This document shows, piece after piece, positions 7,269-56,186 of a stretch of DNA of 64,000 bases (within the stretch, counting starts at the first letter, position 1; the number at the start of each line of letters is the position of its first letter). This stretch comes from Selaginella moellendorffii (Eukaryota > Plantae > Lycopodiophyta), in contig NW_003314328.1 of NCBI RefSeq assembly GCF_000143415.4, forward strand, positions 1-64,000, written 5' to 3'. The position numbers and the translations under genes are program-made. The notes beneath the pieces are model-generated. The model ran no database searches. It was not told where the DNA came from and saw only the letters and a program-made list of their open reading frames with translations.

Positions 7269-9836
7269 TTGGTGGAAGTGAGGGACAATCAAAGGGTGGA
7301 AGTGAGGGACATCTTTGATTGTCCCTAGGGAGTGCTTGGATTTGAGATTTCGATTTAGATCTAGCTTTTTGCATTGTCTAAATCTAACTTTTTCCATTTC
7401 CTTTCTTTTGTTCTTTCTTTTCAGGATTTTGGTTTAGATCTAGCTTTTTGCATTGTCTAGATCTACCATTTCCTTCTAGCTTTTTGTCATTTCTCTTCTT
7501 TTGCTCTTTCTTTATTTGTCTTCATGGCAGATCAGCAATCTCCTCCTTTGACTCTGGAGAAGCAGTTGGTACAATTGCTTGATGCTATATGCTTGCAATT
7601 GACCAACCAAACTCAATTGATGGTGGCGTTCACGACACGTGGTACAACTCCTCCTGCTCTTGGTGCCAATCCTCGCGTTCGGCCGGAGTTCTTTCGCGGG
7701 AATCCTGGGGATGATGTGTACCATTGATTCGATCACTTCACGGTGATTGCCACATATCATTCTTGGGATGATGCTCGACGTTTGCGTGAGTTTCCCACGT
7801 GTCTTCAAGGGACGGCGTTGCAGTGGTACAATGGGTTGAGCGCAGCCACTCGTGGGGATTGGAGTGTTCTTCCAGACGTCTTTAAATGTGCCTTCGGACA
7901 TGCTGACGACTGTGATGATGCCTTCCAACAATTGCATCGTCTTTGCCTTGCACGTAGATGCTTCTAATATTGGTCTTGGAGGTGTGTTAATGCAAAAAAG
8001 CCCAAGTGTGCCTGATCAACGTCATCCCATTGCATATATAAGCCGTACGTTACAACTAGCAGAGGTGAATTACTCCACGACAGATAAGGAGTGTTTAGCG
8101 GCAATTTGGGGTTTCGAGAAACTTCATGCATATCTACATAGTTCTCGGACGTTACTTGAAGGTAACCATGCTGCCATTACTTCATTATTGAAGTGGAAGA
8201 ACCTGGTTGGTCGTACTGCTCGGTGGGCTTTGAAGCTTCAGATTTATGATTTTGATATTGTTCATCACCCAGGGAGTTCTATGGCTGATGTTGATACTCT
8301 TTCTCGAGTTCCTCTTTCTTCTCCACTCTCTTCTCATATTTTTGATGAGCCTGTTGTTCCAGCATTTGTGGATTTTCTAGACGAGGATTCTATGCTGTCG
8401 GCGGTTGCTATATTTGATGTTCAGTGCCCACAAGGCGTAGAGCAAGATCTACCTTCTCTTGATGAGGTCCACGAGGCTCAAAAGATTGAGCCATGGATTC
8501 GAAAGCTTCAAGATGCGTTTGAGAATCCTGCATCACTTGCTGATGACTTGCCTTTCTGGCATTTACATTCTCAATATCGCCTTGAAAATGGCCTTCTTTA
8601 TTTTGTGGGGATAGATCCTAATGATCATTTATAGCTGGTGGTGCCTTCTGTCTTTATTCTGCAGTTTCTCCATGCCTACCATGATTCTCCTGTTCTATGT
8701 GGGATATCGTCGTGTGACCGAAAAGTTGCGCAAGTCTTTCTATTGGCCGGAGATGCGATGTGATATTATCCAGTATGTGTGTAGCTGTGTTTGGTGCCAA
8801 GCTCGTAATACTCCCCCTCGTGCTGCGGAAGGACGGTTGGAGTCAATTGTAATTTCCCGTCCGTTTGAGTTGGTGGTGTTTGATCTTATGGGACCTTTTC
8901 CACAGTCGACTGCTAGCAATGAGTATGTTATTATTGCTTCTAACTACTTGACTCATTCGGTGGAAGTTGGTGCTCTTGCTAGCGCCTTTGCAACTGCTGT
9001 TGGATACTTCCTCCTCAATCAAGTGGTGTTCCAGCATTCTTATCCAAAGCGGATTCTTTCGGATAATGGTCCCGCATTTATGGCTGAGGCATTTTATGTT
9101 TTGACGTCTTGGTTGGGGATACGCCACATTTTCACAAGTGCTTATCATCCACAATCAAACGGTCTAGTGGAATGGCTTGTTCGAACATTCAAAAGGATGA
9201 TTGCAAAGTATGTGAACTTTCAGCATTCAGATTGGGATGGTTATTTACCATCTCTTCGGTATGCATATGTCACAGGGGTGCAGAGTTTTGTTGGTGCTTC
9301 ACCATATAAACTCCTATATGGTCATGATCCAATATTACCAACGGAGCTGGGTTTACCTTCGCAATTGCTACAAGCTCCCGATGCTAGGTCATGGGATCAA
9401 TATTTGATAAGCATTCTTCCACTTATCCGAGCAAAATTTGCCGAACACTTAGGCCGTGTACAAGTGGGACAACAACAGCACTACAACTCCTATCATCTTC
9501 CACCTGCAAAGTACAAAGTGGATGATTTGGTGTTAGTCTATTTTTCCCATCTTACAGTATGTGGTTTATCTAAGGGGCTCCTTGTGCAGTGGAAAGGACC
9601 ATATCAGGTGTTGTGACAAGTTGGACCACAAGTTTATAAGGTTTGGCATGACGTCCAGTAGACCGATCCTCCAAAGATTGTGCATGTGCAGCGGTTGAAA
9701 TGCTTCATACAAAGAGATCAAGAGCAATTAATACCATCTACAGATCCACCAATGCTTCCTTCTAATGTCCCTTTAGATCCCGGCCCGTCTACAAGAGAAT
9801 TTGACGGCCTTCCATTATTCCGAGAGGAGGGGATGA

Positions 9837-12143: not shown

Positions 12144-14031
12144 TCAATTGGCAAAGCTTGGTGGCACTTTTCCTTTGAGGAAATGCTCAAACAAGGACAA
12201 AGCTTGCTGTGGTTTGTCTAGGGGCACCATATGACCGGCTCCGAGCACCGTCAAGAATGTCAATCCATTGTAAGCTTGCGACCAGCCAGCAACCTGCGAA
12301 ATTACCTTTCGTGTAAGATTTTTCTTGAAGACTATATCACGGGGGATTTATTTCACCTTGTCTTTGTGGCTCCAGGCAAACCATGGCGTTTGCGAGGTCA
12401 GATTCAGCTCTTTGATCCAGCTTCTCGTTGAGAGTGTTGATACCACTCCATCGGCATCACCACTGCGAGGAGAGGTGAAAAACCAAAATGGTAAGCTTTT
12501 GCAAAGTACCTGTATATCCAGATTCGAAGTTTTTTCTGGATCAAGGATTTGTAGAGCGGTAGCATGGACACAATTATATCGGATGCCTGGTAATACTCTG
12601 ATGCCTTCGAGCTGGTGCAAAACAAGATCAAAGCTGGTAAAATAAGGATCATACTTGCATGAAAGTATTTACTTGCAGAGCTTCCACGAGTTTGTTGAGT
12701 TTCCTGAACTTGCTAAATTCAAACTAGCTTGGACGCTTCGCTGATTGAGGTAACTTTCCGTTTTATCATCGCAAGGATTGTAAGCATTCACCAGCATATT
12801 TGTGTGTAGGGACTGAGACTGTAAATACAAGCCAGCTTGTCCTCAGATCGCATGGAAAAGAACAAATGGAGTTTACCGTGATAGACGACCCGTTTTTACA
12901 CGGAGGTTTGTATATATTGTAGTGACTAAGTCCACTTATCAAGCGGTTCGTGATGGCCGAAGCTCCTTGACAGTTTGGATTCATGGAACCTCCGAGGATT
13001 GGGCGCATGGTGGAAAAATCGCAGTTTTGGATCAGCTCGTTGTAAGTCTGCTCTGGAATGAGTGAGTGACTGTAGTAAAATTCAACATCGCCTCGCATGT
13101 CATGAGCAGGATCAGTCCAGGCATTTCCTAGCTGCGGTAAAAAAGGGTTACTTCCTTGCTCTTTTCTGTCGTCCATTTCACAGTATCTTACCGAAAATCC
13201 TTTCAGGTTGATGATGTTCTTACCATTAGCGTTGTTCTCCAAGATTTTCATAGCCAGAGTCGGGATATAGTGACCTGCGTACTGTTTGAAATCAAAGATC
13301 ACAGTGACTCGGTAGCATAACTTACCGGAGTAGCTCTCCCCCAACAAGTAAAACTCGTTCTTCGAGTACTCTGGAAAGTTTCTAAACCACTCAAGCAGGA
13401 ACTGGAGATTATCGGAGGCTACAGAGAATTCTCGTAAGGAAAGTAAGTCGATTTTTACTTGAATGCTCTTACCAGTCATCTCGTCGTTGTAGATTGTATA
13501 ATCGGAGGTGATGTTGGTGTAAGAGAAACCAGTGCCATGAGGAGACTCCAGAAATATTAAGTTGGCCGCTGCAAAAACTCTCCTTTATCTCCAGAAGCTC
13601 AATCGAACGACAATGAAGCCCACCTTTGTTCCATGCATTGCGGCGTTTCTCCAGTTTAGTACCACTAATATCGACGGAGAAAGGTCCGATCTCTCCGAAA
13701 GCTCCAGCTCCAACGGAAGAACAACCAGGCCCTGACAAGGCATTCAGTAAGTTTACTCCTCTTCTCCATGCTTGCTCTTAATTGATTTACCTCCTGAAAG
13801 CCACAGAGCTAATGGTTGCGATGTTTGATTCTGGTGATCGGCCTCAAAGAACCAGTAAAAGTACGCTCTTTGCGCCGACGCATTCACAACCAAGTGGCCA
13901 GCGTACTGCTTGAATTGGACTTGTGGCTGTCCGGGAAGATTTCGAACGAGATGGGAGGGATTTGCTGCCTGCGACGCAACGATAGTGAGCAAGATCAAAA
14001 CTATCCATGTCAAGCCGGTAGGCATGACCAT
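12144..14031 (-). CDS. Serine carboxypeptidase-like protein (peptidase S10, clade II-like), multi-exon
   Basis: Signal peptide, [49 protein letters not shown]; stop at 12144-12146. Confidence 0.93.
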
Positions 14032-50029: not shown

Positions 50030-51389
50030 ATGAAGGTCGAAGAGATTGAGCGCCTCATGCTTGAGCCGCTATCCCCAACTCCAAGCTGCTTCCTTTCTCT
50101 CTCCCACTTTGATATGAAATACATCTTCCATCCCTATATGCAAGGTGTTGCGTTCTATCCAGGCTCTCGCTCGGACGTGCAGAACGAGAGCTTGATCCAC
50201 CAAGCGAGGCTCTCACTCTCTAAAGTTCTGCTCCACTTCTACCCAGCAGCTGGGCGCCTGGCGCTCTCCAGCGATGGCAACTCGTATGGAATCGACTGCA
50301 ATGCCGCTGGTGTCGAGTGGACAGTGGCAAGAGCCGACTTTCCGCTTGACAATCTCGACTACTCTCAGCCATCGCCCGACTTCTCGGCTCTGATTCGAAG
50401 TGGCAAGTATGGAAGCTCTGCGGCACCACTCGGAAGCCCGCTGCTAAGCATCCAGGTAACCAGTGACCAGTGTTTCTTGAGGATTTCATCCCCTGGATTT
50501 CATCTAGGTGACAAGGTTCTCGTGCGGAGGCATTTCGGTGGCTTGGGCTGCGGACCATGCACTAGCTGATGGAACTGGCCGGGTGCATTTCCTAGTATCT
50601 TGGGCAGAGAGTTGTCTCAAAGGTGAGATTAGCCAAGTTCCTCGCATTGATCGAGATCTCGGGCCCCAGCAGCTGGACTACCCGAGAGCAAGTGATTTCT
50701 CGCCGGTTGCAAGCGGCGGCCATGATCTTCCAAAGTCCGGTAACATAGCGATGAGCGGTCGAATCTTCTGCTTCGAGAGAGCCTACATTGAAAAGCTCAA
50801 GGAGATGGCCGGCGTGGGGTTATCGAGATTCACAGTGCTATGTGCTCACATCTGGATCAACATGTGTGCAGCGAGGGATCTGCCCGATTCCACGAGCACC
50901 ACCAATTCCATGGCAGCCAACTGCAGGAAAAGGCTAGCTCCTCAGCTGCCGGACGACTTCTTTGGGAATGCAGTGCTCCACGCGGTGGCAACGACGACTG
51001 CTGGTGAGCTCCGGAAAGGTGGCCTCCGCCATGCTGCAAGCTTGCTGGAGGATGCAGTTTCGACGAGCTTTGGCATGGAGGGGATCACGAAGAAGCTTAG
51101 CTCCAAGGGCATTGCAGCGGACAAGCTTGGCAGGAATTGTAACATGTTGTGCTCGAGCTCGCCGCGGTTCCGGTACTACGAGATTGATTTGGGATGGGGG
51201 AGACCAGAAGCCGTGCGGCATGTTGGATTGGAGAGGCTTGGATTGGATGGACTTTGCATGTTCAATCCTCATCCAAGATCACCCCAGGGGATTGAAGTCA
51301 CCATAACTTTACCAACATGGACACTGGAGAGGTTGAGACGTCTCCTTGAAGACGCGTGGAGCGCATACTTGTCTTGTGAAACCAAATGA
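50030..51389 (+). CDS. BAHD acyl-CoA acyltransferase, 2 exons
   Basis: FYPAAGRL, conserved Q-intron at IQ|VT, HALADG (HxxxD), FFGNA, DLGWG (DFGWG). Confidence 0.95.
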
Positions 51390-51838
51390 TAAATAAGTGG
51401 AGACATAATAGCTGAAGTCTTATATAAACCATAGAAGGTTAAAAAAGATTTTGATGCTATTCCCTCATGCTTGAACGTGGGTGAGCTCAGTTGCATGGGA
51501 GATGAGTTGGTGCTTCACAGCCGGGGAAGCGATGCTCTAAACATTTACCTTTTGTTAAAAATGTATGTGACGGGGGGGGGGGGGAGAGAAAAAATTATAT
51601 GCTCTATGTTATCAAGTGACCTTTTGGAATCTTGGGCCGACTAATCCAACTTGACATTCAAGCAGTTCTTCCAGCCCCTGGTAGTGTGCCATGGCCTGTC
51701 CACCCAGCTCCTACCGTGCCTGCTCGCCATATCGATGGCAACTTTCCCTTAACGCGTAGGAAACAGCAAGAGCCACGTAGAAAGAGTTAACGAGAGCCCA
51801 TTTCGACTAAAGGTGAGATCAGATCTAGGACTTGTGAA

Positions 51839-53845
51839 ATGGGAAGTGTAGATGTATACTCCATGGACGGAGCTGATAGCCACTTGAAGGAAGTTCGTAG
51901 GATGGTCAAGGGTTTAGACCACGCCAGCATGATAGCGCTCGAGGGCACTGCTCTGACAATCGAGCAAGTCACAGCAGTTGCTAGGCGCGCTGACCATATC
52001 CATGTTGAGCTTGCTGTCCAGAGTGCCAAATCTCGAGTGGACAAATGCGCAGAGTGGGTCATGGAGAGTGTCGCGAAAGGAGTCGATACCTATGCAATCT
52101 CCACTGGCTTCGGAGCTCACTGCAATCGAAGGACGGCAAATTTCTCGGGCCTGCAGCAGGAGCTAATCCGCTACTTGAATGCTGGCATCATGGGCACCAA
52201 TCCAAGCAATGTCTTGCCTGTTCATGTCACGCGCGCCACCATGCTGGTGAGGGCCAACTGTTTGGTGCAAGGCTACTCGGGAACACGTTGGGAGATCCTG
52301 GATGCCATTGTCAAGCTCATCAATGCTCAAGTTACGCCCAAAGTTCCTCTCCGAGGATCAATCACTGCTTCGGGGGATCTCATGCCGCTGGCCTACATTG
52401 CAGCCATTCTAACCGGAAGACCAGATTCAGTAGCTTTCACCAGAGATGGAAGCATCACCTCTGCCCAAGAAGCCCTCAAGCTTGCGGGAGTTGAAGCTCC
52501 ATTCGAACTGCGGCCCAAGGAAGGAATAGCGCTTGTGAATGGGACTTCGGCGGGTGCAGCTCTGGGATCTCTCGTTTGCTTCGATGCCAACGTTCTCGTC
52601 GTCTTTGCTGAAGTCTTGACTGCCATGTTTTGCGAAGTCATCCACGCACGCAGCGAGTTTGTAGATCCGCTCATCCACAAGCTGAAGCACCACCCTGGGC
52701 AGATCGAAGCTGCGGCAATCATGAACCACGTCCTTCAAGACAGCGCTTTCATGGCGTCCGCAGCTAGACTGAACCAGGTTGACAACCTCAAAAAGTTCAG
52801 GCAAGACCGCTACGCAATACGAAGCTCTCCGCAATGGCTAGGCCCCCAGATCGAAGTCATCCGCCATGCAACTCGCTCCATCGAGCGAGAGATCAACTCG
52901 GTCAACGACAATCCCGTGATCGACGTTGCGCGTGACAAGGCGCTTCACGGTGCAAACTTCCAAGGCACTCCCATCGGTGTCGCGATGGACAACGTGAGAA
53001 TCGCCCTGGCCGCAATCGGGAAGCTCGTCTTTGCTCAATTCTCGGAGCTGGTCAATGCCAGCTTCAACAACGGGCTGCCTTCCAACCTGTCAGCTGGTCC
53101 AGACTCGTCCCTTGATTACGGATTCCATTGCGCAGAGATTGCCATGGCTGCCTACATGTCCGAGCTTGCATACTTGGCGAATCCCGTCACCACCCACGTT
53201 CAGACGGCCGAGCACCACAATCAGGCAGTCAACTCTCTCGGACTCGTCTCCGCGAGGAAATCCGAAGAGGCCGCTGAGATTCTCAAGATGATGCTGTCCA
53301 CGTACTTGTTGGGCATCTGCCAGGCGATCGATCTGAGGCATCTGGAGGTGGCATTGCAAGGAGCTGTGATGAAAGTTCTCTCCTCGATCGGGGATGAGTT
53401 CTTCCCGGCTGCCTGTGTTGAGAGCATGCTGCTCGAAGTGGAGAAGCAGTATACGTTCAGCTTCATTGACGATGCAATGGACGGCTCCTCCACACTACTA
53501 AACAAGCTGAGGCAAGTCTTTCTCGCCAATCCCACCACGCAGGGCTGCTCGGTCAGGAAATTTGGCGAGTTTAAAGATCGGTTGAAACCAAAACTGGAGG
53601 AGGCGATTGCCACAACCAGGAAAGAGTCCCTGGACAAACCTGCGACTCATATCATAGAGAAGTGCGTCTCATACCCGCTGTACCAGTTTGTTCGTCATGA
53701 ACTGGGCACGGAGATGCTCACAGGGGGTGGCCTGGAAGGAAGATCTCCCAAGCAGGACCTGGACAAAATATACGATGCATTCTGCAATGGGAGCCTGATG
53801 GAGCCGCTCTTCAAGTGTCTTGAAGGGTTTGAGCAGCATGCCTGA
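51839..53845 (+). CDS. MIO-dependent aromatic amino-acid ammonia-lyase/aminomutase (PAL family), divergent, intronless
   Basis: ITASGDL (MIO), catalytic Tyr loop DTYAISTGFGA, QDRYAIRSSPQW, NSVNDNP, NFQG; several pocket residues differ from PAL. Confidence 0.95.
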   Translation: MGSVDVYSMDGADSHLKEVRRMVKGLDHASMIALEGTALTIEQVTAVARRADHIHVELAVQSAKSRVDKCAEWVMESVAKGVDTYAISTGFGAHCNRRTANFSGLQQELIRYLNAGIMGTNPSNVLPVHVTRATMLVRANCLVQGYSGTRWEILDAIVKLINAQVTPKVPLRGSITASGDLMPLAYIAAILTGRPDSVAFTRDGSITSAQEALKLAGVEAPFELRPKEGIALVNGTSAGAALGSLVCFDANVLVVFAEVLTAMFCEVIHARSEFVDPLIHKLKHHPGQIEAAAIMNHVLQDSAFMASAARLNQVDNLKKFRQDRYAIRSSPQWLGPQIEVIRHATRSIEREINSVNDNPVIDVARDKALHGANFQGTPIGVAMDNVRIALAAIGKLVFAQFSELVNASFNNGLPSNLSAGPDSSLDYGFHCAEIAMAAYMSELAYLANPVTTHVQTAEHHNQAVNSLGLVSARKSEEAAEILKMMLSTYLLGICQAIDLRHLEVALQGAVMKVLSSIGDEFFPAACVESMLLEVEKQYTFSFIDDAMDGSSTLLNKLRQVFLANPTTQGCSVRKFGEFKDRLKPKLEEAIATTRKESLDKPATHIIEKCVSYPLYQFVRHELGTEMLTGGGLEGRSPKQDLDKIYDAFCNGSLMEPLFKCLEGFEQHA

Positions 53846-53978
53846 GGGAGTTAATCAAATAAAGGACTGCATAGCAAAATCTTTTTGTGCGTTTGATACA
53901 CGTTTTTGTCACTGTTTCTTTTTCTTTCAACCTTTAATAAGACGACACTTCCAGCGCAATATGGCATATGGCACAACT

Positions 53979-54780
53979 TTAAAGTTCAAGTTCGGCTTGG
54001 AGAATTCCTGCTGGCGGCCACCACTTTGCGAACCGATGAAGATTCATTCGAAGCCGACATTCCCTATGATGACCTTGCTGCAAAGTCTCGGCCTGGAAGA
54101 GGAAGTTTTAAAATCGATGTCGAACCAAACCTTCCAAGAGAGATTTAGATTTCTTACTTGTTTTTCCCAGTTTGTGAAGACACTAGAGATCAAAAGGAAG
54201 GTTATCGGTTGTGTGCCTGTTCCACAAAGAATTCCAATCACTAGTCCCTGTTCGATTTGAGAGGAACACAAAACTTTGACGATCAGGAGTGACAAAACAC
54301 GATCATTCACACCTTTCCATTGAGGCCGAAATGGAACGCGAGACTGTAAGCGATTGGTACACCAACAATGTAGTAAGCTCCCAGATTTGCAGCAGCAGCA
54401 GTAGCTTGCCATCCACAACCCCTCGCAACACCGAAAGTTCTCACGATCGATCATAAAATCCCATGAAAGTCATCTCCGAAGTTCTTGGAGCGATTATGAG
54501 CTTACCCGAGATGGATCGTTGGATATCATCCATGAAGGAAATGAGGGCTGTGATCGGTCCAAGCTTCGCCACATTGTTGATAACTTCTGGTTCGTTGCTA
54601 TAAACTCTTCCCAGAAAGTGGCGAGCCAAGAACAAGAGAATCGCCATTGTCGTAGCATCAAGGAGGGCGAGACCAAGTGTGACAAAGAAGGCAAACCGCG
54701 CATTGGAAACTTGGCCAGCTCCAAGCTCATTGGAAATTCGCGTACTATGAAAGACCAAAACTAGAGGAATGTCCATACCT
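53979..54780 (-). pseudogene. MATE (DTX) transporter, C-terminal half only
   Basis: STRISNELGAG, VYSNEPEV, GVARGCGWQ..NLGAYYIVG, TNWEKQ with introns; no room for N-terminal exons before the peroxidase. Confidence 0.85.
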
Positions 54781-55051
54781 AAGAAAACAAAGGAAAAGGT
54801 TAAGCATTAATTTAAAAGGGTGTGAAGAAATTTCACATTACTTCCAGCAAATAATTTTTACAAAAAATAATTTCACTTTGTCTACTCGATGAGCAACCTT
54901 GTGGTACAAAACCCTGAGAATCATTGCCAGAACTGCTAAAGCTAGATAATAATAAGATCCACTCATCAGAATAGTCCACCTCAAGAATCGCACTTATATT
55001 ATAATGAACTAAATTGCATGACAGTAACTTGAGCTGCGGAGTCTAACCAAG

Positions 55052-56186
55052 ATGAGATTTCTGGCTGTTTTGATTGCAATCGCAGTGATTTTTCCAAGCT
55101 CTTCCCACCAATTCTGGCCCGGTTTCTACGACTCGAGCTGCCCAGGCCTCGCATCCATCGTCGCGCAAGTTTCACTGAGGAGATTCCAGCAGCTGACCAA
55201 TCACCCAGCACAAGTTCTTCGGCTCTTCTTCCACGACTGCTTCGTAGAGGTTTGTGTTGATCGGGTAGAGCGCGTTTGCCAATCCCACAAGCAATGCAGG
55301 GCTGCGATGGATCGATCCTCATCGGCCAAACTCCGCAGTCCTCGGTCGAGAGAGACTCCGTGGCAAACCGGGACTTAGTCCAGGATGCGTTTGATACGAT
55401 CGATCTCGCGAAGCAAGCCGTGGAAGCCCAGTGCCCGGGTGTGGTCTCGTGTGCTGATATACTTGCGATGGTCACTCGAGATATGTTGATCCTGGCAAGT
55501 TTCCAGCATACTTGTATGTCCTTGTTTTGATCTTTATAAACTCTTCCAGGCGGGAGGGCCGGGCTGGAATCTGGCGCTCGGACGGAGGGATGGAACAGTG
55601 TCACGCGCGGATAGCGCGCTTAGAGAAATCCCATCGCCAAGGTCTGGTCTGGACGAGCTGCTCAAGAACTTCCACAGCAAAGGACTCAACTTACTTGATC
55701 TCGTCACGCTCTCTGGTATGGATATATAGCTGCTAGCTCGAAAAGCCTCGATGATCTTCTTTTTTTTCAGGCTCTCACACGCTCGGGGTCTCCCACTGCT
55801 CGCAATTCAGCCAGAGGCTCTATGGAGTCAACACCTCTCTGGACGGCACTGACCCTTCTCTCGATCCATCCTTCGCGAAGGAGCTCAAGAAGGACTGCCC
55901 GCCAGGAGCCCCTGTGACGGCCATCGAGTTCTTCGACAAGGCCGCGCCTTTCACCTTCGACAACCATTACTTCAAGAACCTGGAAGCCGGCAGATCGCTG
56001 CTCACATCCGACGAGAGCCTCCTCGCCTCCTTCCCCTCCAGGGAAATCGTCAGGCTATTCGCTCGAGATCCACCGCTGTTCTTCTTTTCCTTCGCGGCAT
56101 CCATGGACAAGCTCTCCAGACTGGGCGTCAAGACCGGCGGGGCGGGCGAGATCCGGCGATCGTGTAACCGATTCAATGCGCAGTAG
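55052..56186 (+). CDS. Class III secretory peroxidase, 4 exons
   Basis: Signal peptide, FYDSSCP, LRLFFHDCFVEGCDGS, VSCADIL, GSHTLG, FDNHYF. Confidence 0.96.

Follow-up and report, generated by a model that had tools for sequence, protein, structure and literature searches.

The DNA window analysed here is the whole stretch of 64,000 nucleotides that begins contig NW_003314328.1 of the lycophyte Selaginella moellendorffii. At positions 51839..53845, on the plus strand, lies an intact and intronless open reading frame (ORF) for a protein of 668 amino acids (aa). The protein belongs to the aromatic amino-acid lyase family, whose catalysis depends on 4-methylideneimidazole-5-one (MIO). The coding sequence ends with a stop codon at 53843-53845 and was identified from the ORF itself, a match to Pfam PF00221 (Lyase_aromatic; 487 bits against a cut-off of 27.3, residues 39-504) and a match to parsley phenylalanine ammonia-lyase (PcPAL, PDB 1w27). 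PcPAL is the best solved relative, at 751 bits, with query residues 13-664 aligned to residues 39-708. The alignment runs through residue 664, and the domain layout of plant phenylalanine ammonia-lyases (PALs) is present, including the C-terminal shielding domain. Numbers in the PcPAL frame follow from this alignment: they equal the query number plus 25 up to residue 221 and plus 26 thereafter. The short N-terminus of the PAL-like protein is taken as real because an in-frame stop codon lies upstream at 51788. The protein from the other haplotype, XP_002987180.1, carries the NCBI annotation "phenylalanine ammonia-lyase" and nothing more specific. A literature search found no paper naming XP_002987180, EFJ11756 or D8SUU4.

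The gene is transcribed. A 2241-nt contig assembled from RNA-seq run X1 matches the window with no differences and no splice, and gives the transcript a minimum extent of 51644..53884 on the plus strand. In the stranded runs X19 and X20, about 12% of each of which was read, the whole ORF was covered at 0.4-5.8x. First mates fell on the minus strand only, which fits a plus-strand mRNA. The AlphaFold2 model of the protein, built from a 34-sequence alignment, reached a pLDDT of 89.2 and a pTM of 0.91. A Foldseek search with this model returned PcPAL, sorghum PAL and the Taxus phenylalanine aminomutase (PAM) at TM 0.92-0.93, and the protein is predicted to fold as a PAL.

The catalytic residues of the family have been kept. 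In alignments to PcPAL and to land-plant PALs, 13 of the 13 catalytic residues checked were unchanged. In PcPAL numbering these are Tyr110, the Ala-Ser-Gly triad, Asn260, Gln348, Tyr351, Arg354, Asn384, Phe400, Glu484, Asn487 and Gln488. The catalytic Tyr is Tyr85 of the query (52091..52093, plus strand), the triad from which MIO forms is Ala177-Ser178-Gly179 (52367..52375, plus strand), and Tyr351 and Arg354 correspond to Tyr325 and Arg328. An earlier reading of the sequence alone, referred to here as the first-pass annotation, had described the triad, the catalytic Tyr and the Arg as intact, in agreement with the alignments. The segment Glu458-His459-His460-Asn461-Gln462-Ala463 (53210..53227, plus strand) keeps Glu484, Asn487 and Gln488, and its flanking positions are changed (Q485H and D489A). 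Judged by alignment, the complete MIO catalytic machinery is retained.

Changes are found in the substrate pocket. The first-pass annotation had drawn attention to the motifs ELIRYLNAG, YGFHCAEIA, AEHHNQA, HGANFQG and YAISTGFGAHCNRR, all of which are present. Aligned to 1w27, as it had proposed, they map in turn to F137Y, K456H/G457C, Q485H/D489A, G398A and G111A/V112I/T113S/T119H/S120C/H121N. The frequency of these residues was counted by column in a MAFFT alignment with 119 land-plant PALs. Tyr112 (codon TAC, 52172..52174, plus strand) stands at PcPAL Phe137, the Phe/Tyr selectivity position. This residue is His in phenylalanine/tyrosine ammonia-lyases (PTALs) and Tyr in the tyrosine aminomutases (TAMs) of grasses (PMC13586772; PMC9226071). 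Among the land-plant PALs, Phe occurs there in 111 and Val in 3. The Phe137-Leu138 pair that marks PALs is accordingly Tyr112-Leu113 in the query. His430-Cys431 (53126..53131, plus strand; His430 is CAT at 53126-53128) replaces the near-universal Lys456-Gly457. Lys456, Gly457 and Gly398 were each found in 119 of 119 PALs, and Gln485 and Asp489 both in 118 of 118. Ile230 (52526..52528, plus strand) replaces Leu256, a residue for ortho-position specificity (PMC9226071) that is Leu in 118 of the 119. In PcPAL, L256, L134, F137 and I460 have been shown to set the tolerance for ortho, meta and para substituents (PMC9226071). With V207M added, the altered active-site or adjacent invariant columns are F137Y, L256I, V207M, G398A, K456H, G457C, Q485H and D489A. 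Most of the hydrophobic pocket is kept (L134, L138, L206, V259, I460 and F400). The query thus resembles PcPAL1 (PDB 1w27/6f6t) in overall identity (about 53%), fold (TM 0.92), shielding domain, MIO triad and catalytic residues. It differs from PcPAL1 in these pocket residues other than the kept ones, in a rewritten loop around the catalytic Tyr, and in length, being about 45 residues shorter through a shorter N-terminus and two deletions in the shielding domain.

The new residues are rare across the wider family as well. In a multiple alignment of family representatives, 89 extend over position 456 and 88 of these have the Lys; the single exception is a degenerate protein in which the catalytic Tyr is missing too. 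Tyr at 137 occurs in only 2 representatives, one from a basidiomycete and one from an actinomycete, and both keep the Lys. The combination of Tyr137 with His456-Cys457 is unique in this sample: it recurs in none of the 119 land-plant PALs and in none of the roughly 90 representatives from the wider family, which lends good support to the earlier proposal that the protein is not a standard PAL. The changes of pocket residues are far beyond chance or ordinary variation in the family. A second His-Cys pocket at K456/G457 had seemed to occur in two metagenome proteins (P0195 and P0198) in a pairwise table. It was rejected as a gap artefact, since the multiple alignment places Lys-Gly there and the motif of P0195 reads NYHCKGLDI. 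Both proteins have the fungal-type His-Gln at 137-138, contributed by an upstream exon. The source of that exon is a eukaryotic JGI metagenome contig, in which the fungal-type PAL-like gene (L002:2580-4650; His-Gln at 137-138, NYHCKGLDI) lies head-to-head with a gene for an AMP-binding, CoA-ligase-like protein.

The closest precedent for such a pocket comes from the grasses. Two enzymes annotated as PAL, maize ZmTAM1 and rice OsTAM1, are described in a 2026 highlight of the work by Sakamoto et al. (PMC13586772). At the site of the PTAL His they have Tyr (Y128 in ZmTAM1, Y125 in OsTAM1), and Asn (N449 and N446) stands at the site of the Lys of other PALs. The same source reports that Y128H in ZmTAM1 sharply cuts beta-tyrosine production, that N449K abolishes aminomutase activity, and that ZmTAM1 acts as a TAM, a PAL and also a tyrosine ammonia-lyase (TAL). 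The rice precedent given in the first-pass annotation therefore holds for both sites. Here the TAMs are compared by description, and N446/N449 are equated with PcPAL Lys456 from the paper's "corresponding lysine" and the single Lys in YGFKGAEIA. Like OsTAM1 and ZmTAM1, the Selaginella protein is a plant MIO enzyme of the PAL family that is annotated as PAL, has Tyr at the Phe137/PTAL-His site and has lost the conserved pocket Lys. Unlike them, it comes from a lycophyte and sits on a long branch of its own, outside the grass TAM clade, and it differs in the lid loop and at some 59 further conserved positions. The grass PTALs, represented by Sorghum bicolor PAL1 (PDB 6at7), also belong to the plant PAL family and gained the use of tyrosine through a polar residue at 137. 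That residue is His in PTAL and Tyr in the query, which is thus not a PTAL by this mark.

The lid loop that bears the catalytic Tyr has also been altered, through G111A, V112I, T113S, T119H, S120C, H121N and G127F. In the query the changed inner-loop residues are A86, I87, S88, H94, C95, N96 and F102 (52094..52144, plus strand). Thr-Ser-His at 119-121 was found in 113 of 115 PALs, and G127F departs from the Gly or Ala found at that position in 114 of 115. In PMC9002059, A77, I79, C89 and L97 of the Taxus enzyme TchPAM are given as the inner-loop determinants of mutase versus lyase outcome, and the hydrophilic substitutions A77T, I79S, C89T and L97G are reported to give it lyase character. The corresponding query residues are V82 (PcPAL 107; 52082-52084, plus strand, just 5' of the altered loop), T84, H94 and F102. 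Two of the four, Val and Phe, are hydrophobic as in PAM. In the Taxus-type representative P0123, PcPAL positions 119, 127, 137 and 456 are Cys, Leu, Cys and Lys, which validates the PcPAL-based numbering. The more hydrophobic lid loop of the query gives a hint, from sequence, of some mutase activity.

Other features are shared with Taxus PAM (PDB 3nz4, 2yii; P0123). It too is an independently neofunctionalised plant paralogue of PAL, of similar length (680-698 aa), with a residue other than Phe at 137 and with non-canonical, more hydrophobic residues at 119 and 127 (Cys and Leu in PAM, His and Phe in the query). Its fold superposes on the query model with a TM of 0.93 and a root-mean-square deviation of about 2.0 A. 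Unlike the query, Taxus PAM has Cys at 137, keeps Lys456-Gly457 and uses Phe as substrate, and the two are 45-47% identical. With Tyr at 137, His at 456 and the loop residues V, T, H and F, the Selaginella protein does not fall in the Taxus type.

Taken with the catalytic residues, the pocket leads us to propose, tentatively and at a little under an even chance, a neofunctionalised and lineage-restricted MIO paralogue of PAL. It would act as a lyase and/or aminomutase on tyrosine or on a hydroxylated aromatic amino acid that resembles it. In the proposed mechanism, the Tyr112 hydroxyl and the His430 imidazole, the latter probably paired with the retained Glu458, would stand where PALs have a hydrophobic wall and a Lys-Glu pair. 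They would form hydrogen bonds with the para (or meta) hydroxyl of the substrate. By analogy with OsTAM1 and ZmTAM1, where Tyr and Asn occupy these two sites, the preferred substrate would be L-tyrosine or a hydroxylated aromatic amino acid like it. MIO would remove the amino group to give 4-coumarate (lyase) or, with re-addition at C3, beta-tyrosine (aminomutase). A mixed enzyme like ZmTAM1 is plausible on the same analogy.

Might the pocket serve a different polar substrate? An MIO enzyme for L-DOPA, meta-tyrosine, histidine, tryptophan or a 4-amino/hydroxy analogue, making a Selaginella-specific product, is unlikely, although several features would suit it. With Tyr and His in place and Glu458, His459 and Cys431 nearby, this end of the pocket is more polar and titratable than in any characterised PAL, PTAL, TAM or PAM, and L256I and V207M alter its ortho/meta side. 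Side activity on Tyr and His has been reported for hornwort PALs (PMC9262799). However, the residue set is without precedent for any such substrate, and no candidate metabolite is known. The unchanged L134, L138, V259 and I460 argue against a much larger substrate such as Trp.

Several findings weigh against a tyrosine-related function. The first concern the extent of divergence. A word-index search returned a single protein at 98% identity, XP_002987180.1 on GL377644.1, which is the other haplotype of the same locus; the collection searched also contains the window itself. The remaining best 120 matches were land-plant PALs only, at 55-58% identity. In an exhaustive search of 1.84 billion protein representatives the land-plant PALs collapse to one representative at 57% identity, followed by a Taxus-PAM-like protein (47%) and then by fungal and bacterial enzymes. 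No orthologue in another species was found in either search. Among 302 near-invariant columns (at least 95% conserved in the 119 land-plant PALs), the query differs at 59, and the median PAL at 2. The only rows of comparable deviance were its own allele and two evidently mis-modelled proteins. The changes showed no significant enrichment near the active site (14/62 versus 28/185, p=0.18). Since the divergence is global and unfocused on the active site, the pocket changes could reflect general drift. The term "rewired pocket" used in the first-pass annotation may therefore overstate how far the changes were targeted.

The remaining findings concern the precedent and the gene itself. Where the grass TAMs have Asn, the query has His-Cys. 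Two other proteins with Tyr and Asn give no beta-tyrosine, and ZmTAM1 retains PAL activity despite both residues (PMC13586772). Expression was low in both raw-read runs (X19 and X20), and two replacements in the other haplotype, R324H and H284R, affect motifs near-invariant among other PALs.

The protein-wide spread of changes, the persistence of PAL activity in ZmTAM1 and the retention of every catalytic residue, together with the greater part of the hydrophobic pocket (L134, L138, L206, V259, I460 and F400), would fit an essentially unchanged phenylalanine ammonia-lyase. Its odd residues would then be tolerated drift in a redundant, fast-evolving paralogue. We consider this rather unlikely. 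Not one of the 119 land-plant PALs lacks Lys456, and of the 89 representatives with the site covered, which include enzymes with varied residues at 137, 88 keep it. Its loss in a working Phe lyase would be without precedent in the sample. The only plant cases reported without this Lys are tyrosine aminomutases (PMC13586772).

The origin of the gene was examined by phylogeny. In an IQ-TREE analysis (LG+C20) of 44 sequences, which included neither an outgroup nor a grass TAM, the branch that leads to the query and its allele measures about 2 substitutions per site, against 0.12 for the median terminal branch. No fixed attachment point on the PAL tree was resolved. In the approximately unbiased (AU) test, a clade with another S. 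moellendorffii PAL (P0100) was not rejected (delta lnL 2.8, p-AU 0.45). The gene may be an old paralogue or, equally well, a very fast-evolving Selaginella duplicate. Either way it stands apart from the grass TAMs, because it occupies its own branch and they have been placed inside the grass PAL clade (PMC13586772). This agrees with the independent origin proposed earlier.

P0100 is itself of interest. This gene (L004:4001-6181, on GL377620.1) is an intronless member of the S. moellendorffii PAL family and reads GTDILGVTTGFG. It has Leu at the column of the catalytic Tyr110, Val at F137 and Phe at L256. From this sequence, P0100 may have no catalytic activity or may rely on another base. S. 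moellendorffii appears to have a diversifying PAL family. An origin of the query gene as a retrocopy, suggested by its missing intron, was rejected, as P0100 is also intronless.

Loss of the catalytic Tyr in P0100 indicates that the PAL family does decay in this genome. The query could in the same way be a paralogue on which constraint has relaxed and which is decaying or no longer catalytic, transcribed without an enzymatic role or with a non-catalytic one. The very long branch, the 59 deviant columns, R324H and H284R in the other allele, the low RNA depth and the confinement of the gene to S. moellendorffii in the searches would all fit such decay. Against it, the frame of 668 codons is free of stops and frameshifts in both haplotypes, even at an amino-acid divergence of about 43%, and 0 of 13 catalytic residues have changed. 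Between the two haplotype ORFs there are 24 nucleotide differences, of which 10 count as synonymous and 14 as non-synonymous (Nei-Gojobori). The resulting allelic dN/dS of 0.43 is below 1 (one-sided binomial p=0.039 against neutrality) and matches that of a neighbouring PPR gene (0.46). The fold prediction is also confident. Decay is thus improbable. The PAL-like gene is live and maintained, being intact in both haplotypes and transcribed without splicing.

The nearest neighbour is a BAHD acyltransferase gene, which lies 450 bp upstream of the PAL-like ORF on the same strand (50030..51389, plus strand; exons 50030-50455 and 50508-51389). Pfam PF02458 matched both exons, which were searched separately. 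The intron (50456-50507) is 52 nt long with GT..AG borders, and its spliced joint was found in runs X1 and X20. The motifs HALAD (HXXXD) and DLGWG are present. The nearest solved structures to exon 2 are hydroxycinnamoyl-CoA transferases: a hydroxycinnamoyl-CoA:tartrate transferase (tartrate HCT), agmatine coumaroyltransferase, rosmarinate synthase and HCT. Such a neighbour mildly favours a hydroxycinnamate-producing, that is lyase, role for the PAL-like protein. In the lyase version of the proposed mechanism, 4-coumarate would feed a coumaroyl conjugate made through this adjacent enzyme. In the other haplotype (L001 ~8700-9544; window positions 50542 and 50713-50715), the BAHD gene has a 1-nt insertion that shifts the frame just before HXXXD, together with a 3-nt deletion. 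Runs X5 and X20 contain reads with the insertion as well, and one BAHD allele looks null. The frameshift weakens the case for an obligatory two-gene pathway.

A more specific proposal can be made from these elements. The protein would be a lycophyte tyrosine 2,3-aminomutase, or a mixed TAM/TAL, independent of the grass TAMs and holding its substrate by a Tyr/His(-Glu) clamp in place of Tyr/Asn. With the BAHD acyltransferase it would form a two-gene module whose product, a conjugate derived from beta-tyrosine or a 4-coumaroyl one, is so far undescribed in Selaginella. As a whole this is quite unlikely. No paper linking Selaginella with beta-tyrosine or with aminomutases was found in the literature search.

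Downstream lies a class III peroxidase gene (approximately 55052..56186, plus strand), recognised by Pfam PF00141 on the ORF 55276-55527 and by a collinear called gene in the other haplotype. Stranded reads over 54925-55900 have their first mate on the plus strand, opposite to those of the BAHD and PAL-like genes. They could come from an antisense transcript or from a paralogue, as many differences occur there. A MATE transporter was considered as a cluster member and rejected, the MatE piece (54157-54746, minus strand) being a three-exon fragment only. It sits in a stretch of about 830 bp (53965-54795) that the other haplotype lacks. The many RNA reads found on it show fixed differences together with loose ends, and so derive from an intact paralogue elsewhere. 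The remainder of the 64 kb has no additional phenylpropanoid genes; it contains PPR genes, a retroelement, a serine carboxypeptidase, a GH3 and others. About 38 kb upstream of the PAL-like gene, the regions 7852-9616 and 12766-13479 contain the remnant of an LTR-retrotransposon pol (RNase H and integrase) and a serine carboxypeptidase(-like) fragment.

Plant aminomutases and tyrosine-using lyases have repeatedly been hidden under "PAL" annotations, as in Taxus PAM, grass PTAL and the rice and maize TAMs. If the function proposed here is correct, the Selaginella gene would represent a further independent origin, the first outside seed plants, with a different residue solution (His-Cys for Lys-Gly). 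It would help to define the features of the pocket and lid loop that decide substrate choice and the outcome of lyase versus mutase. It would also provide a new scaffold for the biocatalytic production of beta- or substituted aromatic amino acids. Should the enzyme instead be an ordinary PAL, the near-universal Lys456 would be shown to be dispensable, which would be informative as well. For Selaginella itself, the proposed function could point to unrecognised tyrosine-derived chemistry.

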